From the NCBI GenBank assembly GCA_028826165.1, contig JAPDFW010000058.1, positions 372,001-436,000 on the forward strand: a DNA stretch of 64,000 nucleotides, given 5' to 3'. Below the pieces are notes generated by a model, which was given only the letters and a program-made list of their open reading frames with translations, was not told where the DNA came from and did not search any database. A program made the translations under genes and the position numbers. This document shows, piece by piece, positions 6,537 through 47,999 of this stretch (positions are counted from its first letter, which is position 1; each line of letters starts with the position of its first letter). The DNA is from Anaeramoeba ignava BMAN. Lineage: Eukaryota > Protista > Anaeramoebae.

Positions 6537-6690
6537 AAAAGAAAAAGAAGAAAAAGGAAAAAAAAAATTTTTTTTATTCCACTTTTTTTATTCCACTTTT
6601 TTTTTTTGAATTATTGAATTTGAATTTGAATCAAAATTCTCAAATAATTTTAATGAATGAAGAAATCAAAAAAAAACAAATTTAATTTTT

Positions 6691-8295
6691 AAATATAAAT
6701 TCAAATCAAAAATAAATATTATTTTATTTAATTATTTATTAGCTATTTATTAAACTTTAAACATAAATTCTAATTCTATTTAATTATTTAAATTAAATTA
6801 TTTATAAATTATTTATTAATTATTATTTAAATTTTAAATATAAATTTAAATCAAAAATAAATATTATTTTATTTAATTATTTATTAATTATTTATTAAAC
6901 TTTAAACATTAATCCTTATTCTATTTAATTATTTAAATTAAATTATTTATAAATTATTTATTAATTATAATTTAAATTTTAAATATAAATTTAAATCAAA
7001 AATAAATATTATTTTATTTAATTATTTATTAATTATTTATTAAACTTTAAACATTAATTCTTATTTTATTTATTTATTTAAATTAAATTATTTATAAATT
7101 ATTTATTAATTATTATTTAATTTTTAAATATAAATTTAAATCAAAAATAAATATTATTTTATTTTATTATTTATTAATTATTTATTAAACTTTGAGCATA
7201 AATTCTTATTCTATTTAATTATTTAAATTAAATTATTTATAAATTATTTATTAATTATTATTTAAATTTTAAATATAAAAATGATCAAAAATAAATATTA
7301 TTTTATTTAATTATTTATTAATTATTTATTAAATTTTAAATATTAATTCTTATTCTATTTATTTGTTTAAATTAAATTATTTATAAATTATTTATTAATT
7401 ATAATTTAATTTTTAAATATAAATTTAAATCAAAAATAAATATTATTTTATTTAATTATTTATTAATTATTTATTAAACTTTGAACATAAATTCTAATTC
7501 TATTTAATTATTTAAATTAAATTATTTATAAATTATTTATTAATTATAATTTAAATTTTAAATATAAATTTAAATCAAAAATAAATATTATTTTATTTTA
7601 TTATTTATTAATTATTTATTAAACTTTAAACATTAATTCTTATTCTATTTATTTATTTAAATTAAATTATTTATTAATTATTTATTAATTATAATTTAAA
7701 TTTTAAATATAAATTTAAATCAAAAATAAATATTATTTTATTTTATTATTTATTAACTATTTATTAAACTTTGAACATAAATTCTTATTCTATTTAATTA
7801 TTTAAATTAAATTATTTATAAATTATTTATTAATTATTATTTAAATTTTAAATATAAATTTAAATCAAAAATAAATATTATTTTATTTTATTATTTATTA
7901 ATTATTTATTAAACTTTGAATATTAATTCTTATTCTATTTAATTATTTAAATTAAATTATTTATAAATTATTTATTAATTATTATTTAAATTTTAAATAT
8001 AAATTTAAATCAAAAATAAATATTATTTTATTTTATTATTTATTAATTATTTATTAAACTTTTAAATATTAATTCTTATTCTATTTAATTATTTAAATTA
8101 AATTATTTATAAATTATTTATTAATTATTATTTAAATTTTAAATATAAATTTAAATCAAAAATAAATATTATTTTATTTAATTATTTATTAATTATTTAT
8201 TAAACTTTGAACATAAATTCTTATTCTATTTATTTATTTAAATTAAATTATTTATAAATTATTTATTAATTATTATTTAAATTTTAAATATAAAA
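6691..8295. repeat. Minisatellite, ~145-bp unit, about 11 copies
   Basis: aaatataaatttaaatcaaaaataaatatt recurs at ~6691, 6836, 6981, 7126 ... 8142. Confidence 0.9.
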
Positions 8296-9257: not shown

Positions 9258-12200
9258 ATGTTTCCAAGATTTTCAACAACTCCTTCAAGATTTGGAAATT
9301 ATGATTTACTTCGTACTCCAAAAGTTAGTTTAAAAACACAAGGAAATGTAAATTAAATTTATTTTTAAAAAATTTTTAAAAATTAAAAGTGAATTTTATT
9401 TTTATATAACATTTTAAATTAGACGTTATTTAATTATTTAAATTAAACATAAATTCTAATTTAAAATTAATCATAGATTTCAATTCAATAATTAAAAATT
9501 AAAATTAAAATTAAAATTAAAATCAAAATCAAAATCAAAATCAAAATTAAAATTAAAATTAAAATTAAAATTAAAATTAAAATTCAAAAATTAATTTAAA
9601 AAGACAATAGAAGGACTTAATAAAGAAAACTTTGAACTAAAATTAAAAATATATTATTTAGAAGATGAACTCAAAAAATTTATACAAGATGATGAAGTTG
9701 ATGAATCTTATCCACAACAAATTGCAGAATTAAAAACAGAACTTGAAATGAAAACCAATGAATTAGAAGAAACAGATAATTTATTAAAAGAAGCAAGAGA
9801 AACAATATCAGATTTACAACAACAACTTCAAGAAACTCCAACAAAAAAACCAGCATTTCTTGATAAATTATCATTTAGTGGATTAAGAAAAAGCCAGTAA
9901 ATAAAATAATAATATTTTTTAATTAAATTATTTTAAATTAAATTGTTTAAATTAAATTGTTTTAATTAAATTGTTTTAATTAAATTGTTTTAAATTAAAT
10001 TATTTTAATTAAATTATTTTAAATTAAATTATTTAAATTAAATTATTTAAATTAAATTGTTTTAAATTAAATTGCTTTAAATTAAATTGTTTTAAATTAA
10101 ATTGTTTTAAATTAAATTGTTATAAATTAAATTATTTAAATTAAATTATTTAAATTAAATTATTTTAAATTAAATTATTTTAAATTAAATTGTTTAAATT
10201 AAATTGTTTTAAATTAAATTATTTAAATTAAATTGTTTTAAATTAAATTATTTAAATTAAATTATTTAAATTAAATTATTTATAAATTGTTTAAATTAAA
10301 TTATTTAAATTAAATTGTTTTAAATTAAATTATTTTAAATTAAATTATTTAAATTAAATTATTTATAAATTAAATTATTATAAATTAAATTATTTAAAAT
10401 TAAATTATTATAAATTAAATTGTTTTAAATTAAATTATTTTAAATTAAATTATTTTAAAATTAAATTGTTTTAAAATTAAATTGTTTAAAATTAAATTGT
10501 TTAAAATTAAAATTGATTTAAATTAAATTGTTTTAAATTAAATTATTTAAATTAAATTATTTAAATTAAATTGTTTTAAATTAAATTGTTTTAAATTAAA
10601 TTGTTTTAAATTAAATTATTTTAAATTAAAATTGTTTTAAATTAAATTGTTTTAAATTAAATTATTTTAAATTAAAATTATTTTAAATTAAATTGTTTTA
10701 AATTAAATTGTTTTAAATTAAATTATTTTAAATTAAATTATTTAAATTAAATTATTTATAAATTAAATTATTTTAAATTAAATTATTTTAAATTAAATTA
10801 TTATAAATTAAATTGTTTTAAATTAAATTATTTTAAATTAAATTATTTTAAATTAAATTGTTTTTAAATTAAATTGTTTTTAAATTAAATTGTTTAAATT
10901 AAATTGTTTTAAATTAAATTGTTTTAAATTAAATTGTTTTTAAATTAAATTGTTTAAATTAAATTGTTTTAAATTAAATTGTTTTAAATTAAATTATTTT
11001 AAATTATTTTTTTAAAAATTGTTTTAAATTAAATTGTTTTAAATTAAATTATTTTAAATTAAATTGTTTTAAATTAAATTGGTTTTAAATTAAATTGTTT
11101 TTAATTAAATTATTTTAAATTAAATTGTTTTAAATTAAATCGTTTTAATTAAATTGTTTTAATTAAATTATTTTAAATTAAATTATTTAAATTAAATTGT
11201 TTTAATTAAATTGTTTAAATTAAATTATTTTAAATTAAATTGTTTTAAATTAAATTGTTTTAAATTAAATTGTTTTAAATTAAATTGTTTTAAATTAAAT
11301 TATTTTAAATTAAATTATTTAAATTAAATTATTTAAAAATTGTTTTAAATTAAATTGTTTTAAATTAAATTGTTATAAATTAAAACAATTTAAATTAAAT
11401 TATTTAAATTAAATTATTTAAAAATTGTTTTAAATTAAATTGTTTTAAATTAAATTATTTTAAATTAAATTGTTATAAATTAAATTATTTTAAATTAAAT
11501 TGTTTTTAAATTAAATTGTTTTTAAATTAAATTGTTTTAAATTAAATTGTTTTAAATTAAATTGTTTTAAATTAAATTATTTTAAATTAAATTATTTATA
11601 AATTAAATTATTTTAAATTAAATTATTTTAAATTAAATTATTTATAAATTAAATTATTATAAATTAAATTATTTATAAATTAAATTGTTTTAAATTAAAT
11701 TGTTTTAAATTAAATTGTTTTAAATTAAATTATTTTAAATTAAATTGTTTTAAATTAAATTATTTTTAAATTAAATTGTTTTAAATTAAATTGTTTTAAA
11801 TTAAATTATTTTAAATTAAATTATTTAAATTAAATTGTTTTAAATTAAATTGTTTTTAAATTAAATTTTAAATTAAATTGTTTTAAATTAAATTGTTTTA
11901 AATTAAATTGTTTTAAATTAAATTGTTTTAAATTAAATTATTTTAAATTAAATTATTTTTAAATTAAATTGTTTTAAATTAAATTGTTTTAAATTAAATT
12001 ATTTTAAATTAAATTGTTTTTAAATTAAATTGTTTTAAATTAAATTATTTTAAATTAAATTATTTAAATTAAATTGTTTTTAAATTAAATTATTTTAAAT
12101 TAAATTATTTTAAATTAAATTGTTTTAAATTAAATTATTTTAAATTAAATTATTTTAAATTAAATTATTTTAAATTAAATTGTTTTAAATTGTTTTAAAT

Positions 12201-15200
12201 TAAATTGTTTTAAATTAAATTGTTTTAAATTAAATTGTTTTAAATTAAATTGTTTAAATTAAATTGTTTTTAAATTAAATTGTTTTAAATTAAATTGTTT
12301 TTAATTAAATTATTTTAATTAAATTATTTTTTAATTAAATTGTTTTTAATTAAATTGTTTTAAATTAAATTGTTTTTAATTAAATTATTTTTAAATTAAA
12401 TTGTTTTTAATTAAATTATTTTAAATTAAATTGTTTTTAATTAAATTATTTTAAATTAAATTGTTTAAAAATTATTTAAATTAAATTATTTTAAATTAAA
12501 TTGTTTTAAATTAAATTATTTAAATTAAATTGTTTTAAATTAAATTATTTTAAATTAAATTATTTTAAATTAAATTGTTATAAATTAAATTGTTTTAAAT
12601 TAAATTATTTTAAAAAAAATTATTTTTTTTTTAAAATTTTTTAGTCAAGAATTACTTCAACAAAGTATTGAACTCCAAAAAAAAAGAACTTCAGAAGTTC
12701 AAAATCAAGAAATTGATGCTTTAAAACAAACAATTCAATTAAATAGTGAAAATGATACTCTTAAAGATATGGAAATTAGAAATCTTAATGATAGAAATGA
12801 ACAATTAGTTTCTGAAAACCAAGAATTAACTTCTCAATATGAAGAAATTTCTTCACAACTTGAACAACTCAAAGAAGCATATTCCCAAGAAAAATATCAA
12901 AATAACCAGAAATTAGAAAATTTATCTTCTCAAAACGAAGAATTATCAAACCAATTAAATTCTTTATTCCAAGAAAACCAACAACTACAAGAAACAATCG
13001 AAAATATTAATCAAAAATTATCTCAAAAAAAACAAAAATATCAAAAAAACAAAAACGATTTATTTTCTCAAATCCAACAATTAACTTCCCAAAACGAAGA
13101 ATTATCAGCTCAATTTGATTTATTGAAAACTAATCATGATAAATTAGATCAAGAAAATGAAAATTTATCTTCTATGATTGAAGAACAAACTCAATATCTT
13201 GAAAAACAAAAACAAATTGCTCTTAAACTCCAAAATTTATTGGAACAAAACAAAAAGAAAACAGAAATATTGGAACAAGATAATGACGAAAAAGATCAAC
13301 AACTTGAACAGCAAAATCTTGAAAACAACGAAATTACTGAATCCATAACATCTGCTCTTCAAAAATTGGAAAATTACACTCAAATCATTCAAGAAAAAAA
13401 TGAGAAAATTAGAGAAAAAGAACAAGAATTCCAAAATCTTCAAGATCAAGCCCAAAAAATGCAAAAAGAAATTGAAAACTTATCCCAAAAAGCAAATCAA
13501 ATGGAAAATGAAGATTCTTCAAAAATAGAATCCATTTCTCTTCTTCAAAATGATCTTGAATCCAAAAACAAAGAAATTGAAAATCTTAATTCACAAATAA
13601 ACGATTTGAATCAAGAAAAACAAAATTTAAAAAATGAGATTGCTCAATTAAATGAAAATAATAAAGAATTTGAAAATCAAAACAACCAAATTTCTGGATC
13701 ATTAGAAAATATGAAACAAGAATTCCAAGAAACATATCAAGAACTCCAAAAAGTAATTCTTGAATACAAACAACAAGCTTTGAATGACAATCAACAAATT
13801 GAAAACCAACTGCAAAATATTGCCAAATTAGAAAAAGATAACCAATTATTGAGCGAAAATTTGAAACAAATTGAAAATCAAGAAAATTCTCAATTCCAAA
13901 ATTTACAATCAAAAATCAAGAAGAATGAAGAAAAGAAAAAAGAATTAAAACAACAAATCGAAAAATTACAAAATCAAAACGAACAAACAAAACAATCATT
14001 GATGAAATTAGAAAAACAAGTAGGACATTTAAAAGTGGAAAACCAAAATTTAATGAGAGTTAAAGAACAATTATTAAATCTTAAAAATCAAAACGAATCA
14101 ACAATCAAAGAATATCAACAATCACATGAAAAAGCACAACAATATATTAACGAACTTAAACAAAATCAAACTCATGTTTTCACAAACAGTGAAAGACAAA
14201 AACAAGATTTATTAGATCTAGCTCAAGAAAGAGAAGGTCTTGAAAATGAGATTAATAAACTAAAAGATATGAATCGCCAAAAACAAAATGAGATTAATTC
14301 ATTGCAATCTGAACTTATTGAAGCCAAAAATAAAATTGATGAGTTGAATGAAAATATACAACAACTTGCAAATGAATATACCTCAAAAATACAAGAAATT
14401 GTTGGTCTTTCACAAACTACAACATTAAATCAAAATGGATGGGAAAATCAACAAAATCAAATGAAAGAATTTTTCAATTCTCAAATTGAAAAACTTCAAA
14501 AAAAACTGAATAAAAATGCCAAATTAATTGATGAATTACGCAAAGAAATTGAAAACAAAGATCTCGAAATTATGCAATCAAAGAAAGATATTACTAATTT
14601 AAAAATGGCTGAAAGTCAGAATAATGAATATTATGAACAAGCTATTGATGAACTAAATTCCAAAATTGCAGAAAAAGAATCCATTTTAAGAAACTTAAAT
14701 TTTGAAAGTGATAAAGCTCTTCAAGAAAAAACATCAACAATCGCAGAAAATTATCAACAAGAACTTCAAGAAAGAGATTCATTACTTAATATTATCAACG
14801 ATAAATTACAGCAAATTGTTTCTGATCCAAATTTATTAAGAAGTGATTTAATGAACCAGCAATTCAAAGGTTTATCTTCAAATTTTATTCTTTTGAAAAC
14901 AAATATTTTACAAAAAATTAATCATCTTTTGGATTATAAATTGGAATTGGAAAGAAAGAAAAAAGAAATTGATAATAAATTGAGCAAATTTTCATCAACA
15001 GTGGATAATAAATTGAATGAACAAAAAAGAAAAAACGAAGAAAACGAAAAAAGAATCAAAGATTTAATGTCACATTTGAAAGCTTTAAGAGAACTTAATC
15101 AACAAAAAACCCAAGATTTAGTTTCTGCTCAAGACATGATTCAACATTTAGAATCAGAAAAAACACAAGCAGAAAGCACTATGCTATTATTATCACAAGA

Positions 15201-19266: not shown

Positions 19267-20745
19267 ATGATAAAATATTCAAATTTAGAAAAACTTTCAA
19301 ATGATTTAAAAAATTTATTTCAAAATCAAAATAAAAATGAAAAAGAAAGTTATTTTGATTTTGAAATAATTTGTGAACAAAATAAAACTTCATTTAAAAC
19401 TCATAAATCAATTCTTTCTTCAAGAAGTCAATATTTTAAATCTCTTTTCAAATCAAAAATGAAAGAATATCAAGAAAATAAATTAATTCTAAAAGATGTT
19501 TCAAGTTCAATTCTATTTCCAATTTTAAATTATCTTTATTCAGGAAAGATTAAAATTAATTCAGAAAATGCAATTCAAATTTTAATTTTTTCATCAAAAT
19601 ATTTAATTGATGATTTAATTAAAATTTGTTCAAATTTTATCAAAAAGAATTTACAATTTGAAAATGTTGTTGATATTCTTAAATTATCTGAATCAATGAA
19701 CTTAAATCAATTATTTGATTCTTCTTATCAATTTATTTCTGAAAATTTTGAAGAATTCATCAAAACTCCATTTTTTCTTGAACTTGAAGAAAATCGTTTA
19801 AATTCAATATTATCAAATAATTTTATTGATACAGATGAATTCGAAATTTTTGAATCAATAATAAAATGGGGAAAACATAAATTAAATATTAATCAAGAAA
19901 AAGATAATCAAAAACTGAATAAAGAAGAAAAAGAAAAAATTCAAGATCAAATTTTAAATGTTATTGAAAAAATAAGATTTATTCATTTTTCACAAGAAGA
20001 ACTTGAATATACTTTGAAAGAAGATTTAATTCCAAATCAATATCTTCGGGAATTAGTTCATTTTTTATTGTTACGAAATAAAGAAAATGAAAATGAATTA
20101 GAAGAATTTATTGAAAAAGAAAATCAAATCCAAAATTCATTCATTTTCAAACCAAGATTCGGTTTAAATTTTTCAGAAATAATACAAGAAAAAGAAGATT
20201 TCAAGAAAATAAAAGAATGGATAAATGATAATGAATTCTTTTACAGAATGGGATTAGGATTTTCAGCAGAAAGAGATGGATTTAATTCTTTCGAATGGCA
20301 TAAAAAATGTGATGAAAAAGGAAAAACATTAGTTATTATCAAAACCAAAGATAATTTTATTTTTGGAGGATTTACTTCAGTTGGATTTACAACTGATAAA
20401 TCAAAATGGAGAAAAGAAAATAGGGAAGATGAAGATGGATATATTCCAGATCCAAATGCATTTATTTTTTCATTAAGAAATGATAAGGATAATAGAGTTC
20501 CAGTGAAATTTCCAATTAAAAAAGATGAAGAAGAAAATGCAATTTTTTATCAAAAAATTAGTGGTCCAAATTTTGGAAATCGAGATTTTTATTTATTTCC
20601 TAATTTATATAAAATCGATTCTAATTTTGGTTCTACTTATAAACTTCCTTATGGAATTAAATATGGAACAAAAAAAGCTAAAAGTTATTTAGCTGGTTCT
20701 TATGATAAATTGATTGTTGATGAACTTGAAACTTTTTTCATTTAA
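19267..20745 (+). CDS. BTB/POZ-BACK-TLDc protein
   Basis: DFEIIC...FKTHKSILSSRSQYFKSLF (BTB), BACK helices, and TLDc motifs RDGF..FEWHKKCD.KGKTLVIIKT..FIFGGFT, AFIFSL, GPNFG, ELETF. Confidence 0.92.
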   Translation: MIKYSNLEKLSNDLKNLFQNQNKNEKESYFDFEIICEQNKTSFKTHKSILSSRSQYFKSLFKSKMKEYQENKLILKDVSSSILFPILNYLYSGKIKINSENAIQILIFSSKYLIDDLIKICSNFIKKNLQFENVVDILKLSESMNLNQLFDSSYQFISENFEEFIKTPFFLELEENRLNSILSNNFIDTDEFEIFESIIKWGKHKLNINQEKDNQKLNKEEKEKIQDQILNVIEKIRFIHFSQEELEYTLKEDLIPNQYLRELVHFLLLRNKENENELEEFIEKENQIQNSFIFKPRFGLNFSEIIQEKEDFKKIKEWINDNEFFYRMGLGFSAERDGFNSFEWHKKCDEKGKTLVIIKTKDNFIFGGFTSVGFTTDKSKWRKENREDEDGYIPDPNAFIFSLRNDKDNRVPVKFPIKKDEEENAIFYQKISGPNFGNRDFYLFPNLYKIDSNFGSTYKLPYGIKYGTKKAKSYLAGSYDKLIVDELETFFI

Positions 20746-21619: not shown

Positions 21620-24600
21620 TTAAATGAAATAAGTTTCAAGTTCATCAACAATCCATCCATTATAAGAACCAGCTAAATAACTTTTAGCTTCATTTGTGTA
21701 TTTTTTAATTCCATTAGGTAGATTATAACTAGTACCAAAATTTGAATAACCAGATTGTAAATCAGAATTTAAAAGAAAATCACCTATAAATATTTTAATA
21801 AAGATAAATAATTAATTTTAATAATAATTAATAATAATTTAATTTAAAATTAATTTTATTTTAAATTTAAATAATAATATTATTTATTATATTAATATTT
21901 TGGATTATTTATTATTTTAATTTTAATTATAATAATAAATATTTATTAAATATAAATTATTTACGAACTATTTTAATAAAGATAAATAATTTAATTTTTA
22001 ATAATAATTAATAATAATTTAATTTAAAATTAATTTTATTTTAAATTTAAAAATAATAATATTATTTATTATATTAATATTTTGGATTATTTATTAATTT
22101 AATTTTAATTATAATATTAAATATTTATTAATTATAAATTATTTACAATCTATTTTAATAAGAGATAAATAATTAATTTTAATAATAATTAATAATAATT
22201 AATAATAATTTTATTTTAAATTAAAATAATAATATTATTTATTATATTATTATTTTGGATTATTTATTATTTTAATTTTAATTATAATAATAAATATTTA
22301 TTAATTATAAATTATTTACAACCTATTTTAATAAAGATAAATAATTAATTTTAATAATAATTAATAATAATTTAATTTAAAATTAATTTTATTTTTAAAA
22401 TTTAAATAATAATATTATTTATTATATTAATATTTTGGATTATTTATTTATTTAATTTTAATTATAATATTAAATATTTATTAAATATAAATTATTTACC
22501 ATCTATTTTAATAAAGATAAATAATTAATTTTAATAATAATTAATAATAATTTAATTAAAAATTAATTTTATTTTTAAATTTAAAAATAATAATATTATT
22601 TATTATATTAATATTTTGGATTATTTATTAATTTAATTTTTAATTATAATAATAAATATTTATTAAATATAAATTATTTACCATCTATTTTTAATAAAGA
22701 TAAATAATTAATTTTTAATAATAATTAATAATAATTTATTTTAAAATTAATTTTATTTTAAATTGAAATAATATTATTTATTATATTAATATTTTTGGAT
22801 TATTTATTAATTTAATTTTAATTATAATAATAAATATTTATTAAATATAAATTATTTTACCATCTATTTTAATAAAGATAAAATAATTAATTTTTAATAA
22901 TAATTAATAATAATTTAATTTAAAATTTATTTTTATTTTTAAATTTAAATAATAATATTATTAATTATATTAATATTTTGGATTATTTATTAATTTAATT
23001 TTAATTATAATATTAAATATTTATTAATTATAAATTATTTTACCATCTATTTTAATAAAGATAAATAATTAATTTTAATAATAATTAATAATAATTTAAT
23101 TTAAAATTAATTTTATTTTTAAATTTAAATAATAATATTATTTATTATATTAATATTTTGAATTATTTATTTATTTAATTTTAATTATAATAATAAATAT
23201 TTATTAATTATAAATCATTTACCATCTATTTTAATAAAGATAAATAATTAATTTTATTTTAAAATTTAAATAATAATTTAATTTAAAATTAATTTTATTT
23301 TTAAATTTAAATAATAATATTAATTATTATTATATTAATATTTTTGGATTATTTATTAATTTAATTTTTAATTATAATAATAAATATTTATTAAATATAA
23401 ATTATTTTACCATCTATTTTAATAAAGATAAATAATTAATTTTAATAATAATTAATAATAATTTAATTTAAAATTTATTTTATTTTAAATTTAAATAATA
23501 ATATTATTAATTATATTATATTATTTTGGATTATTTATTAATTTAATTTTAATTATAATATTAAATATTTATTAATTATAAATTATTTTTACCATCTATT
23601 TTAATAAAGATAAATAATTAATTTTAAATAATAATTAATAATAATTTATTTTTTAAATTAATTTTATTTTTAAATTTAAATAATAATATTATTTATTATA
23701 TTAATATTTTGGATTATTTATTTATTTAATTTTAATTATAATAATAAATATTTATTAAATATAAATTATTTACTCCCTATTTTTAATAAAGATAAATAAT
23801 TAATTTTAATAATAATTAATAATAATTTATTTTAAAATTAATTTTATTTTAAAATTTAAATAATAATATTATTAATTATATTAATATTTTGGATTATTTA
23901 TTAATTTAATTTTAATTATAATAATAACTATTTATTAAATATAAATTATTTACAATCTATTTTAATAAAGATAAATAATTAATTTTAATAATAATTAATA
24001 ATAATTTATTTTAAAATTAATTTTATTTTAAATTGAAATAATAATATTATTTATTATATTAATATTTTGGATTATTTATTAATTTAATTTTAATTATAAT
24101 AATAAATATTTATTAAATATAAATTATTTATATTTACATCCTCCAAAACTTGGACCATAACTTAAACTATAATAAATTGCATTTTCTTCTCCTTGTTTAA
24201 TTATAAATTTCTTTGGTTTTCGATCATTTTTATCATTTCTTAATGAAAAAATAAATGCATTTGGATCAATAATATATCCATATCCATAATTTGGATAATC
24301 TAACTTTGAATCTAACTTTAAATCTGAATCTGACTCTGAATCTGAATCTGAATCTGAATCTGAATCATCTTCATTCCATTTTGATTTATCAGTTGTCCAT
24401 CCAACTTGAGTAAAACCTCCAAAAATAAAATTATCTTTTGTTTTGATAACAACTAATGTTTTTCCTTTATTATCAACTGCTTTATGCCATTTTTTAGAAT
24501 TAAATCCATCTCTTTTTGCTGAAAATCCTTTTTTCATTTTGGAAAAGAAATTATTATCATTTATCCATTCTTGTAATTTAATGATATATTCTTTTCCTTG

Positions 24601-25838
24601 AATAATTTTTGAATCTGAAAAAATCTTCAACAATTTAAGATTTTGAATTTCATCTTTTTGTTTGAGAATCTTATCTTTCTTTTCAACTTCTTTCTTCCAT
24701 TTCTCTTCAATTTCCTTTTTTTGTTTGTCATTTTCTGATTTCAATTTTTGATTTTCAGATTCAAATGATTTGATTCTTTTATCTCTTCTTTTAATTTTAT
24801 TATCTTTCTTTTCAACTTCTTTCTTCCATTTCTCTTCAATTTCCTTTTTTTGTTTGTCATTTTCTGATTTCAATTTTTGATTCCATTGTTTTTGTTTTTC
24901 AGTTTTAGATTTCAAATCTTGATTCTCCTTTTCTTTTTCTTTGATTTTCTTTTCTTTTTCTTTAATTTTTGTTTGATTTTCTTGATCTTGAATTTCAAAA
25001 ATAGTTCTTTCAAAATGAATTAAAAAAGAATTTGGAAGAAAAATATCAAATTGTTTTAATTTATCAAAATCTTGTTTTGAAATTGAATCTTTATCAAATA
25101 ATGAAAAAAAAGAATGAAATAATCTTTTCTTTGCATTTATTTTCTGTTTATATTTCCTTAATTTTAATGAATTAACTCTTTTTTCAATCCAATTATTTAA
25201 AAATTGAAAAAAATCAAATTGAAAAATTTCTTTTTTTTCTTGTTTAAATTGAATAAATTTGATAATTTCTTCTTTAGTTAAATTGAATAAATTCTTATTA
25301 TTTTGAATTTGGGAAAAATTTTGATTTATTAATTCAAAACATTTTATTTCAATTTCATTTGAATTTAAATTTCGATTTTGGAATAAAAATTGGAAAAATT
25401 TGAATAATTAATTGAATTTAAAATTTTTGAATAATTTCTTTTCAATAAATTTAATTTAAAATAAATTGAAATTTCCAATAATTGAATAAGATTTTCTTGA
25501 TTCTCAAAAGAAATATTTCCATAATAAATATAACTTAAAATTGATTCCATTTCTTTTTTATTAAATTGATTTAAAGAAATAAAAAGAGATTCTTGCCTTA
25601 ATGATTCATTAAAAAAAGGAGATCTTGAAGATAAAATTGATTTATGAACTTTAATTTCAAAAGGATTTGATTCATTCTCAACAAAAATTGAAAAATCTTT
25701 AAATGAATTTCCATTTAAAAGGTTTGAATAATTTTTAATTAAATTTTTTGTTACTTTTTTTTCTAAATTTTTCTTTTCATTTTGATTTGCATTTTGATTT
25801 GCATTTTCATTTTGGTTATTATTATTATTATTATCCAT
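21620..25838 (-). CDS. BTB-coiled-coil-TLDc protein; exon 1 25838-24138 (homopolymer frameshifts near 25390-25440), last exon 21783-21620, microexon/intron array between
   Basis: N-terminus nearly identical to the 32610 gene. TLDc ...GPSFGG T|GT donor at 24137; acceptor AG at 21785-21784 gives (C)DFLLNSDLQSGYSNFG...YLAGSYNGWIVDELETYFI*. Confidence 0.85.
21784..24137 (-). repeat. 13 tandem ~180-bp units, each a GT...AG intron, separated by twelve 3-nt putative microexons
   Basis: Minus-strand junctions all read aaatAG-NNN-GTaaa; NNN in transcript order = ATT, GGA, ATG x7, GTT, ATT, TTC. Confidence 0.85.
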
Positions 25839-26571: not shown

Positions 26572-29500
26572 ATGCTTTCAATCGAACAAATTTCAACAAC
26601 ACTTCTCAATAGCCAAAGATTTATTCCTTACATTTCACTTGATAAACAATTATATCAACCAGGAGAAAACATTTTCATTCGAGCAGTAGTTTTAAATTCT
26701 TTTACAAACGAACCATTAATTGATCCAAATGTATTAAATCAACTCAAAAATGCAAAAATCAAAATTCAAGATGCAAGAGATCAAACAGTTTTAGAAGAAG
26801 ATTTAAAATTGGATAATATAAAAGAAAGTAGTGTTTATTCATATTGTTGGAAAACTGATGATTCAACAAAAGGAGGAGAATATAAAGTGGTTATTTCTCA
26901 TTTTATTTCTGATCAATTATTTTCATCTGAAAGAAAATTTGTTATTAGACCTTTTAGAATTCCAAGATTGAATAAGAACATTGAATTTCTTAAGCAAAGT
27001 TATTCAGCAAAAGATGAAGTTGAAGCTATTTTATCAGTTCAAAGAGTAGAAGGCGAAAATAATAAATTGGAGGAAATTTCTGTTACTTATCATGCTCAAA
27101 ATGAATCTGATATTTTTAAAACTGAAACAAAAAATCTTGATTCAAAAGGAAAATTATTGATTAAATTTACTTTGCCTTCTCTTATAATTTCTGATGTTGT
27201 TTTGAATTGTATTATTAAGGACGGAGATGTTCAAGAAAATGCAATTAAAAACGTTCCTGTTGTGAATTCAAATTTTGATGTTAGTTTCTTTCCTGAAGGA
27301 GGAAATTTGGTTTATGGAATCAAATCAAGAGTTTATTTTGAAGCAACAAATGATATCAATGAACCAATTGATTTGGAAGCAGAATTAGTTTCTTCAAACA
27401 ATGAAACAGTTAATCAAAATATCATTTTAAAAACTCAACATGAAGGAAGAGGATTTTTTGAATTTACTCCCCAAAATGATAACAAATACTCTTTGAAAGT
27501 TATCAAACCAAAAAAAGATTCTGAATCAAAAATAGAATTATTTAAAATTCTAAAAGAAGGAGTTTCAATGAAAGTTTTAAAACCCTCATTTTCATTTGGA
27601 GAAGAAATTGAGATTGAAATGATTTCTTCTTATTCAGGAAATTTCAAAGTGGGATTATTTAAAAAGGAAATTGAGATTGGACAAGAATTAGTATCAATTT
27701 CAGAAGATCAAAAATACAAACCAATTATTGTTAAAATTTCACCAAAAAATGAAAAATACCAACAAGGAATAATAAGAATAACAATTTACAAAGTTGAACA
27801 AAAAGAAAATCAAAAAATACTAATTATTCCAACAACAGAAAGATTAACATTCATTAAACAAAAAAGAGAGCTTAATTTCAATATTAAACTTAATAAAGAA
27901 TCTTATATTCCAGGTGAAAAAGTTGAAATGATTATTGAAACAAAGGATCAAAACAATGAACCAATTAATTCAATTTGTGGAATAACAGTTACAGATAATT
28001 CAGTTTATGAAATGACTGAAAAAGCTGATCGAAATCCAAATTTATTTTCTATGGTTCATTTAGAAAATGAAGTATTAAAATTTCATGACTCTGAATCCTA
28101 TCTTGATTTTAATGATGAAATTAGTCAAAGTATTTTTTATATTTTTATATTTTTATATTTTTATTTAAAAAATTAATTTATTTTATTATTATTTTTATTA
28201 GAAAAACTTGATCTTTTACTTGGTATTCAAGGATGGAGAAAATTTGTTTTTTCAAATGATTTTGCTCAAATTTCCAAAAATCAAGAGAAAATTTTGAAAG
28301 CTTTTGTAATTCCTGAAAATATTATCAATTTCCATATTAAATATGATCAAGATTCAATTTCTCTTTCTTGTCTTCCACAAACACCTTTAATCAAAATCAA
28401 AGAACTTATTGAAAAAGGATTTGATATTCCAATTTCATCTCAATATCTTTTCAAAGAAAAGAATATCTTTCAGAAAATGATAAATCAATAAATGATTTGA
28501 AAATTGAACAAGATCAAGAACTCAAAGTTTTGGATTCAAGAAAAACTGGAGAGAAAATATTCGTTAATGTTCTTGATATTGATTTAGTTTCATTAGATTA
28601 TAATCAAAACAACAAAATTTCTTCTGTTAAAAAATATTTTGAAGAAAATGAAGGAATGAAACAACAAAATCAAACAATATTTTTCCAAAATGAAAAATTA
28701 GAAGATGATAAAACATTAAATGATTGTGGAATAAAACATGGAGATGTACTTAAAATGGATTCAAGTGAAATTATGATTGAAATTCATTGTTCTAAATTTG
28801 AAACAATGAAAATTTTTATTGATCCAAAAGAAACTATTGGAAAAGTGAAACAAATTATTGAGGAAAAACTAGGATTCTTTCAAATTCAACAAGACCTTTT
28901 TTTCGACAATAAAAATTTAGGAGATGATAAAACTCTTCAAGAAAATAAAGTCAAACATAAATCAAGAATGCTATTTTTCTTAAACGGATCCAAAAATTTA
29001 AAAATGAAAGTTAAAGTTCAACATTTTGAGAAAATTATTGAATATGAAGTTTTTACAAATGAGGGAATCTATAATTTAAAGAAAAAAATTGAAGAAAATT
29101 TCAAAATTCTTTGTGACAAACAAAAATTATTTTATAATCGAAGTGAAATTTACATTTATAATAATTTTCAAACTGAAATTATTCCAAATAATGCAATTAT
29201 ACAATTAATTACAGATGAAGATGAAGATAGGGATTTGAAATTAACTATAAAAAATGATTCCAAAAATGAAGAATATCAAATTGAAACAAAATTTGGAGCA
29301 ACACTTGAAGAATTAAAAGAAATTATTGAAGAAAAAGTAGGGATTGTACAAAACAAACAAATAACTCTCTTAAATGAAAAAGAACTTGATGATTTAGATA
29401 AAAAATTACTTTATTATTTAATCAATAATGGAGATGTTATTCATGTTCAAGAAAATAGAAAACAGAAACCTTATTTTGATATCAATATTCAATCAGTTTC

Positions 29501-32500
29501 AGGAAAAGTTTTTTCATTAAATGTGAAAGAATCAGACAAAATTAGATTTTTGAAAAAACAAATTCAAAAACAATTACAAATTCCTTTTGAAAAACAAATT
29601 CTTTTTTATAAAGGAAAATATTTGAATGATGTATCAACTCTATCATCCGTTTCAATTTTCAAGAAAGATTCAAACAATGTTTTAATTCAAATGGTTGATC
29701 CTAATACAAAAGTTATTGTCAATATTAACATGCCTGGTGATGAAAAAACAGTACATCAAATTGAATGTGAAATTGGAAACACAATTTATGATTTGAAAAA
29801 ATTAATTGAAGAAAAAGGAATTGTTTCAGAATCCTTTGATTTCTATCAACCTTCAAACCATCGACTTTCAGAAAATGAATTATTAGCTTCTTTAGATTAT
29901 TTCTTGGGACAAAAGGAAATGTCTCTTGATTTAGATTATTATTCAGGTTGTGAAAAAATTGAAATTAAAACATTAACAGGAAAAATTTACATTTTTGAAG
30001 TTAATCCAGATACATTAGTTGGAGAGGTTAAACAAAAAATGGAAAACGAAACAAGAATTCCAGCAGAGCAACAGAGATTCGTTTTTAAAGGGAAATTAAT
30101 ACAAAATGAAAAAACTTTAGGGGATTATAGAATTGAAAATGGAGCATTAATTCATATGGTGTTATTATTAAGAGGAGGAGGTGGAGGAGGATATATACAA
30201 CAACCAGTTCGTAAAAATCAAGTAAAAAAAGAAGTCCCACAAATTGCAAAACAAGATGGATTGAAATTAATCAATGATAAAAAACCATTTCATATTGAGA
30301 TTGAACCATTTGCAAGAGTTTATTCTCATAAATTAAACAAAAAAGAAGAAATTCAAGAAAAAGAAAGAAAAGATTTTACAAACACAATTTATTGGAATCC
30401 ATCAATAAAAAATGAAATTGAAATTGAAAATGAAAATGAAAATCAAGTTAAAAAAAGTTCAGATTTTAAAATTGAATTTGAAACAAATGATTCAATTACT
30501 TCATTTAGAGTTTTAATTGATGGATTTACTAATGATGGAATAATCGGAAGTTCAAATTCTTTTGTTTTTGCTTCAAAAAAACCTTTTTATATTGAACCTA
30601 AATTACCACTTGAAATAACTTATAGTGATGAAATTAACTTTCCTGTTTATTTTGTGAATAATTTCCATAATACTTCATTGAAAATTGAAATGAATATTGA
30701 AGCAAAAAATTTGAAATTAAGTGAAAACAAAAAACAATTTGAATTAAAACCAAATGAAAGATTTGCAGAATTTATCAAAGCAACAATTTTAGAAAGTAAA
30801 TCAAATTTAATTTCCAAAAACATTCCAATCAAAATTACAGCAAAATGTATTGATAAACCATTTATTCAAGATTCAATTACAAAGGAATTGAAAGTTGTTC
30901 CAAATGGATTTCCAGATTATTACATTTATTCAGGAATTCTTTCAAACAAAATCAAAAAAATTGAGAATAAATTTACACTTCCTTCAATCATTCCAAAAAG
31001 TTTAACTTTCTCAATTCAACTTTATCCATCAATTCTTGCTAATTTTACAGAATCAATCAAAAGTTTAATTAAAGAACCTTATGGATGTTTTGAACAAACA
31101 TCAAGTGTTCTTTATCCAATGATAATGGCACAAAAATACTTTAAAAAAACAGGATATGATGATTTAGAACTAATTCAAAAAGCAAACACTTTTATTCAAA
31201 AGGGATACAAGAAATTAATATCATATGAATGTAAAAATGGAGGATTTGAATGGTTTGGATCAGATCCAGCACATGAAGCATTAACATCAATGGGAGTTCT
31301 TGAATTTCTTGATTTATCAACAATATTTTCAGTTAATCAAGAAATGCTACAAAGAACAACAAGTTGGTTAATTTCTAGGAAAGATGAAGAATCAAAATCA
31401 TTCAAAAAAAATGCAAGAGCATTAGATTCATTTGGATATGCACCTCAACACACAACAGATGCTTATATCATTTGGTCTTTATCGGAAGGAAAAATTGAAA
31501 CTGAGAAAATTGGAGATATTATTCAAAGACTTTATCAAGAAACACATAAAGAACATGAAAATGATCCATATTATATTGCATTAGTTTCAGCAACAATGTT
31601 CAATACAAATCAAAATGAACAATCATTGGAATTGGGTAAAAAATTAGTTAAATTTCAAGATAAAAAAGAAGGATTTATTTCTGATTCAAAAACATCAATT
31701 ACATCATCAAAAGGATCAAATTTAATCATTGAAACAACATCTTTAGCAATTCTTTGTTGGATAAAACATGGAAAAGAATTCAGTAAGAATATTGCTCATG
31801 CAAGTGAATGGATTTTTTCAAAATGTTCATCAGGAAAATTTGGATCAACTCAATCAACTGTTTTAGCATTAAAAGCTTTATCTGCTTTTGATGATTTTTC
31901 TGATAAAGAACAAAAAGAAGAAATTTTGATTAATTTATCATTTGGAAAAACACAAAAACAAATTGAAATTGGAGAAAAACAAGAAGATTCTCTTGAATTC
32001 AAATTTGGAAATGAAATTTTTGAAAATGAAAAAGAAATTGATTTTGGAATTGAAATGGAAAAAGGAAAAATGATGAGATTTTCAACAAGATTTGATTATT
32101 ACACAGAAAAACCAAAAGATTCAACAAAATGTCCATTATCAATTTCCACAAAATTAAAAGAAGAAAAGATAAAATTAGGAGAAACATCAGAAATTCATGT
32201 TTCTATTGAGAATTTGGAAAATCAAGAATCAGGAATGGTTGTAGCCATTATTGGAATTGCAGGAGGAATTGAAACAAGATTTGAACAATTACAAAATCTT
32301 GTTAAGAAAGGAATTGTTTCTTCATTTGAATTGTTTGGAGCAAGACAAGTTGTTTTTTATTGGAGAGGAATGAATCCAAATCAAAAAATTGAATTTGATA
32401 TTGAAGTACTTGCAACAATTCCAGGAAAATTTAAATCATCTCCATCAAGAGTTTATTTGTATTATGGAGATGAAGAAGATAAGAAATGGATTGAACCTTC

Positions 32501-32522
32501 TTCTATTGAGATTTTCAATTAA
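26572..32522 (+). CDS. Alpha-2-macroglobulin/thioester protein with ~8 tandem Ubl domains in the bait region, ~1959 aa; intron 28130-28201; 1-nt frameshift at ~28457-28460
   Basis: MG motifs YISLDKQLYQPGE, FFPEGGNLV, HEGRG, SYIPGEKV, GITVTDNSV; spliced LDLLLGIQGWRKF; Ubl array ending LLLRGG; RKDFTNTIYWNP; thioester EPYGCFEQTSS (31086-31097); GGFEWFG; FGSTQSTVLALKAL; PSRVYLYY. Confidence 0.9.
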
Positions 32523-32609: not shown

Positions 32610-34449
32610 ATGAATAATAGCAATAATGATGATAATAATAATAATAACAATAATAACCAAATTCAAAATGCAAATCAAAATGAAAATGAAAATGAAATGA
32701 AAAATTTAGAAAAAAAAGTAACAAAAAATTTAATTAAAGATTATTCAAACCTTTTAAAAGGAAATTCATTTAAAGACTTTTCAATTTTTGTTGAGAATAA
32801 ATCAAATCCTTTTGAAATTAAAGTTCATAAATCAATTTTATCTTCAAGATCTCCTTTTTTTAATGAATCATTAAGGCAAGAATCTCTTTTTATTTCTTTA
32901 AATCAATTTAATAAAAAAGAAATGGAATCAATTTTGAGTTATATTTATTATGGAAATATTTCTTTTGAGAATCAAGAAAATCTTATTCAATTATTGGAAA
33001 TTTCAATTTATTTTAAATTAAATTTATTGAAAGAAATTATTCAAAAAAAAATTTTAAATTCAATTAATTATTCAAATTTTTTCCAATTTTTATTCCAAAA
33101 TCGAAATTTAAATTCAAATGAAATTGAAATAAAATGTTTTGAATTAATAAATCAAAAATTTTCCCAAATTCAAAATAATGAAAATTTATTCAATTTAACT
33201 AAAGAAGAAATTATCAAATTTATTCAATTTAAACAAGAAAAAAAAGAAATTTTTCAATTTGATTTTTTTCAATTTTTAAATAATTGGATTAAAAAAAGAG
33301 TTAATTCATTAAAATTAAGGAAATATGAACACAAAATGAATTCAAAGAAAAGATTATTTCATTCTTTTTTTTCATTATTTGATAAAGATTCAATTTCAAA
33401 ACAAGATTTTGATAAATTAAAACAATTTGATTTTTTTCTTCCAAATTCTTTTTTAATTCATTTTGAAAGAACTATTTTTCAAATTCAAGATCAAGAAAAT
33501 CAAACAAAAATCAAAGAAAAAGAAAAGGAGAATCAAGATTTGAAATCTAAAACTGAAAAACAAAAACAATGGAATCAAAAATTGAAATCAGAAAATGACA
33601 AACAAAAAAAGGAAATTGAAGAGAAATGGAAGAAAGAAGTTGAGAAGAAAGATAAAGAGAATCAAAAATTGAAATTGGGATTTGAAAAAGAAAATAAAAA
33701 AAAAGATAAAATTCTCAAACAAAAAGATGAAGAAATCCAAAATCTTAAACTATCATTTGAGAAAGAAAATCAACAAATCAAAATTGAAAAAAAAATGAAA
33801 CACAATCAAAATGAAGAATCAAATCAAAATGAAAATAAATTATTGAAAATTTTTTCAGATTCAGAAATTATTACAGAAGAAGAATATATTATTAAATTAA
33901 AAGAATGGATAAATGATAATAAATTCTTTTACAGAATGAGATTGGGATTTTCAGCAAAAAAAGATGGATTTGATTGTTTCGAATGGCATAAAAAATGTGA
34001 TAAAAAAGGAAAAACATTAATTATTATCAAAACCAAAGATAATTTTATTTTTGGAGGATTTACTTCAGTTGGATGGACAACTGATAAATCAAAATGGAGT
34101 AACGAAATAAAGCTTTTCAAAGGATCTATTGAAGATCCAAATGCATTTCTTTTTTCATTAAGAAATGATAAAAATGATCGAAAACCAGAGAAATTTCCAA
34201 TTAAAAAAGATGAAGAAGATGATGCAATTATGTATAATTTAGAAAATGGTCCAATATTTGGATATTCCACTGGGTTATATAAAGATGATTTATGGATTTC
34301 TACAGAATTAAAAACTGGATGGACAAATTTTGGTAATTGTTATGAACTTCCTTATGGAATTAAATATGGAACAAAAGAAGCTAAAAGTTATTTAGCTGGT
34401 TCTAAGGATAGTTGGATTGTTGATGAACTTGAAACTTTTTTTCATTTAA
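32610..34449 (+). CDS. BTB-coiled-coil-TLDc protein; true end probably ETFFI* at 34449
   Basis: BTB and TLDc motifs. An extra T in gaaactttttttcatttaa, relative to the paralogs, causes apparent read-through into a microsatellite to 34805. Confidence 0.88.
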
Positions 34450-35195
34450 AAAAATTTTCAAAATCAAATTCAAAATCAAAATCAAAATCAAAATCAAATT
34501 CAAATTCAAAATTAAAATCAAAATCAAAATCCAAATTAAAATCAAATTCAAAAAAAATCAAAATCGAAATCAAATTCAAATTCAAATTCAAATTAAAACC
34601 AAATTCAAAATTAAAATTAAAATTCAAATTCAAAATTAAAATCAAATTCAAAATTAAAATCAAAATCAAAATTAAAATTAAAATCAAATTCAAAATCAAA
34701 TTCAAATTCAAAATCAAAATTAAAATCAAAATCAAAATCAAAATCGAAAATCAAAAATCAAAATCAAAAAAAATCAAAATCAAAAAATTCAAAATCAAAA
34801 ATTAAAATCAAAATCAAAATCAAAATCAAAAATCAAATTCAAAATCAAAATTAAAATCAAATTCAAAATCAAAATTAAAATCAAAATCAAAATCAAAATC
34901 AAAATCAAATTCAAATTCAAAATCAAAATCAAAATTAAAATCAAAATTAAAATCAAAATCAAAATTAAAATCAAAATCAAAATAAATTAAAATCAAAATC
35001 AAAATCAAAATTAAAATTAAAATCAAAATCAAATTCAAATTCAAATTCAAAATCAAAATTAAAATCAAAATCAAAATCAAATTCAAAATCAAAATCAAAA
35101 TCAAAATCAAAATTAAAATTAAAATTAAAATCAAAATCAAAATGAAAATCAAAATCAAAATCAAAATCAAAATCAAATTCAAAATCAAAATTTTT
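34450..35195. repeat. (AAAATC/AAAATT)n intergenic microsatellite
   Basis: Hexamer run seen directly. Confidence 0.9.
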
Positions 35196-35247: not shown

Positions 35248-36744
35248 ATGGAAAAATATTCACATTTAGGAAAACTTTCAAATGATTTAAAAAATTTATT
35301 TCAAAATCAAAAAGAAAAAGAAAATTATTTTGATTTTGAAATAATTTGTGAACAAAATAAAACTTCATTTAAAACTCATAAATCAATTCTTTCTTCAAGA
35401 AGTGATTATTTTAAATCCCTTTTTAAATCCAAAATGAAAGAATATCAAGAAAATAAATTAATTATAAAAGATGTTTCAAGTTCAATTCTATTTCCAATTT
35501 TGAATTATTTTTATTCAGGAAAAATTAAAATTAATTTAGAAAATGCAATTCAAATTTTAATTTTTTCATCAAAATATTTAATTGATGAATTAATTGAAAT
35601 TTGTTTAAATTTTATCAAAAACCATTTACAATTTGAAACTGTTGTTGATATCCTTAAATTATCTGAATCAATGAATTTCAATCAATTATTGGATTCTTCC
35701 TATAAATTTATTTCTAAAAATTTTGAAAAATTTATCAAAACTCCATTTTTTCTTGAACTTGAAGAAAATCATTTAAATTCAATATTATCAAATGATGAAA
35801 TCTTAATAAATGAATTTGAACTCTTTGAATCAATAATAAAATGGGGAAAACATAAATCAAATATTAATCAAGAAAAAGATAATCAAAAACTCAATAAAGA
35901 AGAAAAAGAAAAAATTCAAGATCAAATTTCAAATGTTATTGAAAAAATAAGATTTATTGATTTTACAAAAAAAGAATTTGAAAAAACTTTGAAAGAAGAA
36001 TTAATTCCAAAACAAATTTCAGAAAAATTAATTCAATTCCAAAAACTTCAAAACCAAGAAAATGAAAAAGAATTAAATCAATTTATTGGGAAAGAGTTAA
36101 AAGAATTTATTGAAAAAGAAAATGAAAATGAAAATTCATTCATTTTCAAACCAAAAATTGGTTTAAGTTGTTCAACAATAATACAAGAAAAAGAACATTT
36201 CAACAAATTAAAAGAATGGATAAATGATAATAAATTCTTTTACAGAATGAGATTGGGATTTTCAGCAAAAAAAGATGGATTTAATTGTTTCGAATGGCAT
36301 AAAAAATGTGATGATCAAGAAGAAACATTAATTATTATCAAAACAAAAGATAATTTTATTTTTGGAGGATTTACTTCAGTTGGATTTATAAGCAATTATG
36401 TACATTGGAGTAAAAATCTTGGAGAAGCTGGATATATTTCAGATGAAAATGCATTTCTTTTTTCATTAAGAAATGATAAAAATGATCGAAAACCAGAGAA
36501 ATTTCCTGTTAAATACTTGAAACATAGAACTGCTCTTTCTTATCAATACGATATTGGTCCAACTTTTGGAAAATTTTCTTCTGATCTTTTTTTGGATGAA
36601 AAATTAAAAACTGGATGGACAAATTTTGGTAATTGTTATGAACTTCCTTATGGAATTAAATATGGAACAAAAGAAGCTGAAGATTATTTAGCTGGTTCTT
36701 ATGATCAATGGGAAGTTGAAGAACTTGAAACTTTTTTCATTTAA
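35248..36744 (+). CDS. BTB/POZ-BACK-TLDc protein
   Basis: Close paralog of the 19267 gene; intact 498-aa ORF. Confidence 0.92.
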   Translation: MEKYSHLGKLSNDLKNLFQNQKEKENYFDFEIICEQNKTSFKTHKSILSSRSDYFKSLFKSKMKEYQENKLIIKDVSSSILFPILNYFYSGKIKINLENAIQILIFSSKYLIDELIEICLNFIKNHLQFETVVDILKLSESMNFNQLLDSSYKFISKNFEKFIKTPFFLELEENHLNSILSNDEILINEFELFESIIKWGKHKSNINQEKDNQKLNKEEKEKIQDQISNVIEKIRFIDFTKKEFEKTLKEELIPKQISEKLIQFQKLQNQENEKELNQFIGKELKEFIEKENENENSFIFKPKIGLSCSTIIQEKEHFNKLKEWINDNKFFYRMRLGFSAKKDGFNCFEWHKKCDDQEETLIIIKTKDNFIFGGFTSVGFISNYVHWSKNLGEAGYISDENAFLFSLRNDKNDRKPEKFPVKYLKHRTALSYQYDIGPTFGKFSSDLFLDEKLKTGWTNFGNCYELPYGIKYGTKEAEDYLAGSYDQWEVEELETFFI

Positions 36745-47861: not shown

Positions 47862-47999
47862 AAAGAAGATGATGAAAAAATTTTTTTTACTTTTAGGGAA
47901 AAATTTTTTTGCTTTTTTTTGATAAAACAATTTAAAAAAAAAAAGAAAACGTTTTTTCATTTTTTTCATTTTTTTCATTTTTTTTCATTTATTATTTTT

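Follow-up and report, generated by a model that had tools for sequence, protein, structure and literature searches.

In the protist Anaeramoeba ignava BMAN, genes of a large BTB-TLDc family are interrupted at one homologous site by tandem arrays of near-identical introns, and the spacers between these introns, nearly always 3 nt long, behave, to judge from their conservation and variability, as selected exons. This architecture is real and unusual and is very likely translated, and a further diversification of the encoded loop at the level of splicing is plausible.

The window, by which we mean the whole 64,000-nucleotide stretch that was analysed (contig JAPDFW010000058.1, positions 372,001 to 436,000), carries on its minus strand at 21784-24137 a tandem array of 13 near-identical units of 170-185 nt each, 2354 nt in total. 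Each unit starts with GT and ends with AG on that strand, and the twelve spacers between units are all exactly 3 nt long. The array splits the TLDc-coding part of a BTB-TLDc gene immediately behind the residues GPSFGG (a GPxFG motif), in intron phase 1. The features of the gene, in window positions, are as follows.

24138..25838, minus strand: first exon of the gene (BTB, coiled coil, TLDc), whose last full codons give GPSFGG and are followed by one base of the split codon (phase 1); from Pfam and three-frame translation
23957..24137, minus strand: intron unit 1, 181 nt, with array-specific 5' end; from sequence
23954..23956, minus strand: 3-nt exon candidate 1 (ATT); from junction parse, as are candidates 2 to 12
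23774..23776, minus strand: 3-nt exon candidate 2 (GGA)
23593..23595, minus strand: 3-nt exon candidate 3 (ATG)
23411..23413, minus strand: 3-nt exon candidate 4 (ATG)
23223..23225, minus strand: 3-nt exon candidate 5 (ATG)
23044..23046, minus strand: 3-nt exon candidate 6 (ATG)
22861..22863, minus strand: 3-nt exon candidate 7 (ATG)
22682..22684, minus strand: 3-nt exon candidate 8 (ATG)
22500..22502, minus strand: 3-nt exon candidate 9 (ATG)
22320..22322, minus strand: 3-nt exon candidate 10 (GTT)
22147..22149, minus strand: 3-nt exon candidate 11 (ATT)
21965..21967, minus strand: 3-nt exon candidate 12 (TTC)
21968..23953, minus strand: internal intron units 2-12, 170-185 nt, ~3% G+C, GT..AG, alternating with exon candidates 2-11; from sequence
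21784..21964, minus strand: intron unit 13, 181 nt, with array-specific 3' end; from sequence
21620..21783, minus strand: last exon, 2 bases completing the split codon, then 53 C-terminal TLDc residues and the stop; from sequence

Read in order, the spacers are thus ATT, GGA, seven times ATG, GTT, ATT and TTC. A re-reading of the sequence bore out what a preliminary description had given for this gene: all coordinates and triplets, GT..AG units with spacers of exactly 3 nt at all 12 junctions, phase 1, and the two translations with all triplets included or all skipped. The frame is open both with all spacers joined and with none, and the microexons would contribute 12 of more than 600 codons. 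The array is ~3% G+C and contains only 15 AG and 16 GT dinucleotides, of which 13 each are unit ends. Compared with the internal units, unit 1 has its own 5' end with 7 extra nt and unit 13 its own 3' end with 6 extra nt. Pfam places the BTB domain (PF00651, E=4e-14) on 25365-25838 and the TLD domain (PF07534, E=6e-15) on 24139-24915. Three-frame translation shows one frameshift in the first exon near 25375 (minus strand), between BTB and the rest, which may be real or an assembly error; assembly indels are plausible, since short upstream open frames occur in many paralogs as well. The further claim that no subset of triplets can create a stop holds for all ordered subsets of the window gene, which give 254 distinct products rather than 4096 because seven of the spacers are identical, but it does not extend to all paralogs, where exons starting with AG or AA exist and produce a stop after a preceding T.

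Four intronless BTB-TLDc paralogs lie near the array gene, at window 19267-20745, 32610-34805, 35248-36744 and 47919-49523 (+), and have different loops at the array site. Elsewhere in the window, the plus strand encodes an alpha-2-macroglobulin-like gene at 26572-32522 (MG2, A2M, TED and receptor-binding domains), with several ubiquitin-like domains inside and an apparent short intron at ~28130-28201, and an ORF with four ubiquitin-like repeats at 933-2321. Plain A+T satellites occupy 6680-8294 (145-nt units), 9916-12626 (15-nt) and 59090-60610 (~12-nt); the two of these three that were read hold no AG-NNN-GT junctions, and the ORF at 59585-60724, mostly within the last satellite, is probably spurious.

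A search of the genome with the array unit returned at least 934 matches on many contigs. The expectation that paralogs would hold similar arrays was confirmed by parsing 229 kb of A. ignava sequence, which yielded 32 genes that have the unit at this site. They carry from 0 to 28 spacers per gene, the gene C66 having a single unit, and 302 spacers in total that fall into 24 triplet types. All parsed microexons are of phase 1-1, and their lengths are 3 nt in 285 cases (94%), 4 nt in 12, 2 nt in three and 5 nt in two. The junction pattern matches the genome 371 times and the reversed control once, which excludes chance as its source. Further arrays, on contigs C1, C13, C73 and others, are known from pattern matches alone. 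Judging from first-donor and last-acceptor patterns and from short open frames before the last exon, the genome likely holds roughly 50 array loci. This would be about one in ten family members; with the last exon as query, ~500 candidate TLDc ends were found, many of them fused to BTB. Public annotation does not represent the arrays: among 22 NCBI models matched to array genes, 19 treat the array as one intron and three stop at it. These models say little on the use of microexons, as ordinary aligners miss 3-nt exons, and such exons are overlooked by standard aligners and gene finders (PMC8831610). Protein searches and cluster look-ups returned only genome-based NCBI models and no transcript-derived protein of an array gene; the same protein collection does include a transcriptome-derived protein of another paralog. 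RNA-seq data for A. ignava are described in the genome paper (PMC11550330).

Several observations indicate that the spacers are exons. The splice-site dinucleotides are kept: in the paralog survey, which did not require AG or GT, one or the other was lost at only ~9 of 302 junctions (~97% intact), and genome-wide 371 intact junction patterns stand against one without AG and three without GT. This is not a protection of G+C bases as such, because the three sites of the unit that are most polymorphic (diversity 0.29-0.62) are all among its four C positions. Spacer length is also kept, with 371 family junctions of 3 nt versus 13 of 4 nt; for a generic junction pattern applied to the whole genome the numbers are 1472 versus 97, as compared with 271 and 280 in reversed controls. 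Both the splice sites and the frame-preserving length therefore bear the mark of purifying selection. In contrast, diversity at the three triplet positions is 0.62, 0.30 and 0.69 versus 0.029 per intron site, an excess of 10-24-fold. The AG and GT flanks stand on introns of spliceable size, and in the arrays of contig C1, two of which end in the TLDc last exon, the junction is kept at spacings of 61-425 nt, the shortest being comparable to the ~70-nt apparent ordinary intron at window 28130-28201. A satellite of the same unit body (~90% identity) lies downstream of two array genes, and in the one on C93 the junction is constant, different and has neither AG nor GT. In ordinary satellites that happen to match the junction pattern the triplet is nearly invariant. 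At the middle base of the triplet, which corresponds to the third codon position in this phase-1 family, T occurs in 314 of 371 cases and C in none. Taken together, it is highly probable that the spacers are translated.

Two arguments on composition were weakened or dropped. That all non-T middle bases are non-synonymous was downgraded, as AGA, TGA and AGG may derive from GGA by single changes and two triplets starting with CA exist, and a higher pyrimidine content of the last acceptor relative to internal ones (0.50 versus 0.49) is unsupported. A second family of 3-nt junction arrays, at C1:409304-412862 and C1:1796386-1797785, has ~75-nt spacing and a different triplet set in which triplets end in A or T, with no stop triplets among those listed; at C1:409304-412862 all triplets end in A or T and the middle base is variable, a pattern suggesting that its phase may differ from the phase 1 of the BTB-TLDc family.

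The array site falls in a loop of a conserved fold. An AlphaFold model of a paralog TLDc domain (from an NCBI model with all exons skipped; pLDDT 96.9) places it in a coil between two strands, and a Foldseek search with this model gave E=1.5e-8 to 6r82 and further matches to NCOA7 and V-ATPase-bound TLDc proteins. The fold agrees with those of TBC1D24, NCOA7, OXR and mEAK-7, so that membership in the TLDc family is supported by both Pfam PF07534 and structure. Across 163 paralogs no single sites vary more than the loop and several adjoining positions (loop variability 3.4-3.7 bits, length 0-9), while the rest of the frame is conserved. The preliminary description had singled out this loop as the place where the intronless paralogs differ most; it is indeed among the most variable sites, but its neighbours are equally variable and an earlier loop has larger indels. 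In the 133 paralogs not known to carry arrays, the loop has 0-9 residues (median 3; 30% Gly), whereas full inclusion of the microexons would give array genes a median of ~9 and up to 29 residues. Joined microexons encode mostly Asp, Tyr, Ile, Phe, Asn, Ser and Val. The modelled position suggests that the loop is surface-exposed and may have a binding role. The combination of BTB (PF00651) with a substrate-binding-type domain (PF07534) is present, and a BACK domain occurs in some paralogs, although none was detected in the pieces of the window gene. On these domains the window protein may be an adaptor of a Cullin-3 type ubiquitin ligase, and the BTB domain together with family-wide hypervariability would be compatible with a role in immunity or defence.

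Duplication and loss of cassettes diversify the loop in the DNA. The proposal of cassette-level diversification in the preliminary description is upheld by paralogs that differ in unit number and in triplet order, with the excess variation residing in the exons. Units diverge by 2.5% within arrays and 2.9% between arrays; certain triplets are common to many arrays (ATT in 22, ATG in 21, TTG in 18), and neighbouring triplets are identical in 18% of cases versus 9% for exons of different genes. Such a pattern is what one would predict if units duplicate in tandem, undergo unequal crossover and are exchanged among paralogs, and the special ends of the first and last units may act as fixed borders of the array. 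Triplet order is retained in duplicated genes, as in C21/C91 and the C1 arrays. Among the arrays with shrunken, unequal introns at G000:C1:942330-942802 and 1057852-1073183, two can be recognized as gene duplicates by a common triplet run in the same order. A quickly searched tree of 126 TLDc domains shows 8 array changes, of which only 2 are forced by strong branches; it discriminates poorly between a single origin of arrays and their spread by conversion, and no clear retrocopy was seen in it. At L049 (C24:117071 and 121376) two paralogs, one intronless and one with an array, sit back to back in opposite orientation and have ten identical residues before the motif, which suggests local gene conversion between them. 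Repeats of the intron body also form satellites 3' of two array genes (L043 4680-5530; G000:C137:166807-167619), and three satellite-type units are mixed into the C114 array (L045 minus strand), doubling those introns, which suggests exchange between intron array and flanking repeat.

As to which triplets reach the mature transcript, we tentatively favor varying in-order subsets, that is, substantial subset splicing, at a probability slightly short of even. It is quite possible, though on balance doubtful, that splicing is instead fixed, every intact gene including all its triplets in one loop, and that diversity arises in DNA alone: cassettes that are duplicated, lost or altered at single bases would then distinguish paralogs, alleles and generations. 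In favor of this, protists with short introns as a rule splice out every intron by intron definition. When all exons are joined, the frame stays open and clean in 17 of the 28 complete arrays, which also speaks for fixed splicing; the other 11 hold a stop or a non-3-nt exon, so that 39% of arrays would be broken, whereas the junction with all exons skipped is open in 29 of 29 complete genes, which counts for subsets. The broken arrays may be assembly or polishing errors in repeats. Frame-breaking exons are likewise not depleted, 4-nt exons making up ~4% of spacers and thus not falling below the ~1% that we estimate from intron indel rates, which counts for subsets unless these exons are assembly artefacts. 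Fully included loops would exceed those of the 133 other paralogs (maximum 29 versus 9 residues), and with a quarter of their residues aliphatic or Phe they would be unlike the short Gly-rich loops found there; on the other hand, BTB-TLDc proteins tolerate long loops elsewhere.

The distribution of stops is similarly divided. GA is absent as an exon start, even though Gly is usually encoded by GGA (117 versus 28 GGT) and GA-starting triplets are common in another array family; GA is the single start risking a stop that has a safe alternative, and its absence was counted for subsets, but the argument is weak as triplet types have few independent origins. Stops at adjacent exon pairs number 4 versus 7.3 expected (P=0.08), or 3 versus 6.2 with runs collapsed (P=0.07), whereas non-adjacent pairs show no stop avoidance, 23 of 30 AG- or AA-starting exons lying in genes whose first exon ends in T. 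This adjacent-only trend fits a fixed order better than free choice, and the kept triplet order of the duplicated genes and the four of 27 arrays in which many subsets contain stops were also counted for fixed inclusion.

It is improbable that the array is one long intron holding a minisatellite, with spacers never included and the public single-intron models right. The genome is full of A+T-rich tandem repeats, the unit is also found as plain satellite 3' of two genes, 19 of the 22 NCBI models skip the whole array, a one-unit gene exists, and the first donor and the last acceptor are unlike the donors and acceptors inside the array. However, a skipped satellite leaves without explanation the conserved internal AG/GT and 3-nt length, the 10-24-fold excess variation in three bases, the survival of junctions in shrunken introns and the differences in triplet composition between array families, and in ordinary pattern-matching satellites the triplet hardly varies. 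Very improbable is a choice of one among N exons in the manner of Dscam, or a somatic deletion of cassettes, leaving a single triplet or a shortened array per transcript or cell: the terminal splice sites are distinct and the loops of other paralogs mostly have 2-3 residues, near the yield of one or two exons, but 23 exons would then give a stop versus 17 expected from random placement, and the internal introns have complete, identical splice sites with nothing visible to forbid joining neighbours.

Under the favored reading of subset splicing, the spacers would be real single-codon exons of the BTB-TLDc family, the repeating cassette being an intron plus 3 nt. That cassettes are gained, lost and exchanged, within a gene and between paralogs, by unequal crossover and gene conversion is shown by the 0-28 cassettes per gene and the shared triplets, and selection, to judge from conservation and variability, would keep the splice sites and favor different triplets. 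Because the introns are in phase 1, every residue draws its first codon base from the end of one exon and the other two from the start of the following one; since it spans a junction, skipping one exon removes a residue and can alter its neighbour. Intron definition probably takes out the introns in succession, and subset transcripts may well arise, as donors hardly differ from one another, nor do acceptors, and no skip disturbs the frame. One gene could then produce a single surface loop, rich in Asp, Tyr and hydrophobic residues, in many versions, with a computed 254 possible subset variants in the window gene and up to ~68,000 in one paralog. The likely use, as far as domains indicate, would be to let a BTB adaptor in a ubiquitin ligase of the Cullin-3 type bind varying targets. 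We put forward only tentatively, as possible rather than probable, that this is a single-codon splicing repertoire for intracellular recognition and ubiquitination in a single-celled eukaryote, and that it arose more than once, given similar arrays in other protists.

Such arrays were sought in metagenomes by a pattern scan for three consecutive 3-nt junctions with short introns. Most matches were plain satellites, but in several A+T-rich contigs the triplets vary. Their introns are ~25-30 nt long, cloned in L120, L168, L112 and L083 and diverged in L089, L141 and L157, and the contigs hold runs of 3-nt and some 6-nt exon candidates, known from their sequence pattern. The run in L157 follows an ORF with a Cys/His cluster and coiled coil, and both L157 and L089 have at an end CCCCAAT-type repeats, which resemble the telomeres of ciliates. 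As these variable-triplet arrays lie in unrelated metagenome contigs, the architecture is not confined to Anaeramoeba, and arrays of single-codon exons may have been overlooked in A+T-rich genomes of protists.

Even with fixed splicing, up to 28 consecutive 3-nt exons are extreme, and they have been missed by public annotation in dozens of genes. Array genes test the limits of exon size and packing density for the spliceosome, and provide a loop that can evolve one residue at a time via tandem duplication. If subsets are spliced, this would be junction-level diversification in a unicellular eukaryote, functionally like that of antibody CDR3 but at the RNA level. BTB, TLDc and microexons go unmentioned in the main texts of the Anaeramoeba genome papers, and a literature search, with many subscription papers outside its coverage, found no published description of such arrays.

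Among known systems, Dscam1 has tandem duplicated, domain-sized exons in a recognition protein that splicing diversifies, one being chosen per cluster; the tandem duplication of exons is shared, but a one-of-N choice fits poorly here, with 23 stop-giving single choices. Introner elements, a term that appears in PMC13685798, are near-identical introns dispersed at unrelated sites. The likeness is in the many near-identical introns of one genome, but here all 32 of 32 parsed unit copies are tandem, at one homologous site of one gene family; in the part of the genome that was read, no dispersed non-homologous insertion was found, and further copies with at least 85% identity to the unit belong either to arrays of this family or to satellites lying 3' of array genes. 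The TLDc proteins TBC1D24, NCOA7, OXR1, mEAK-7 and Rtc5 have the same fold as the A. ignava domain, but are few and conserved V-ATPase regulators, unlike the ~500 TLDc ends of A. ignava with hypervariable sites around the loop. Cytohesin-1 has a diglycine/triglycine switch in which a 3-nt exon alters a binding loop by one residue and changes specificity (PMC6314551). The spliceosome can thus handle such exons; that case is one conserved, regulated exon between unrelated introns, with no tandem array or hypervariability.

Closer parallels are the ROCO-LRR and NB-ARC-TPR genes of brown algae, fast-turnover families of candidate recognition proteins whose tandem exon cassettes are shuffled and under diversifying selection, ROCO being alternatively spliced as well (PMC3341825, PMC11378527). 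Tandem exon cassettes are shuffled here too, in the DNA; however, a brown algal exon is a whole LRR or TPR repeat, while ours, at 3 nt, holds no structural repeat but the bases of one residue within a single loop. The Schistosoma MEG system comprises 35 genes and at least 87 proteins, was missed by automatic annotation, and has exons mostly of 15 bp (with ranges of both 6-81 and 3-81 bp stated) between introns of 0.1-5 kb (PMC10526429). It shares with the present arrays rows of very short exons, mostly multiples of three (PMC10526429), and tandem symmetric exons of such lengths are what we observe (phase 1-1, 285 of 302 being 3 nt). The differences are that MEG micro-exons make up most of a secreted protein, whereas here they form one loop of a folded intracellular domain in a BTB-TLDc architecture, and that exons here are typically 3 nt long, between introns cloned from a single unit, with residues assembled across the junctions. 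The array works most like the MEG genes and the exon-shuffled receptors of brown algae, but belongs to neither of them, nor with the single 3-nt exons that tune a binding loop.
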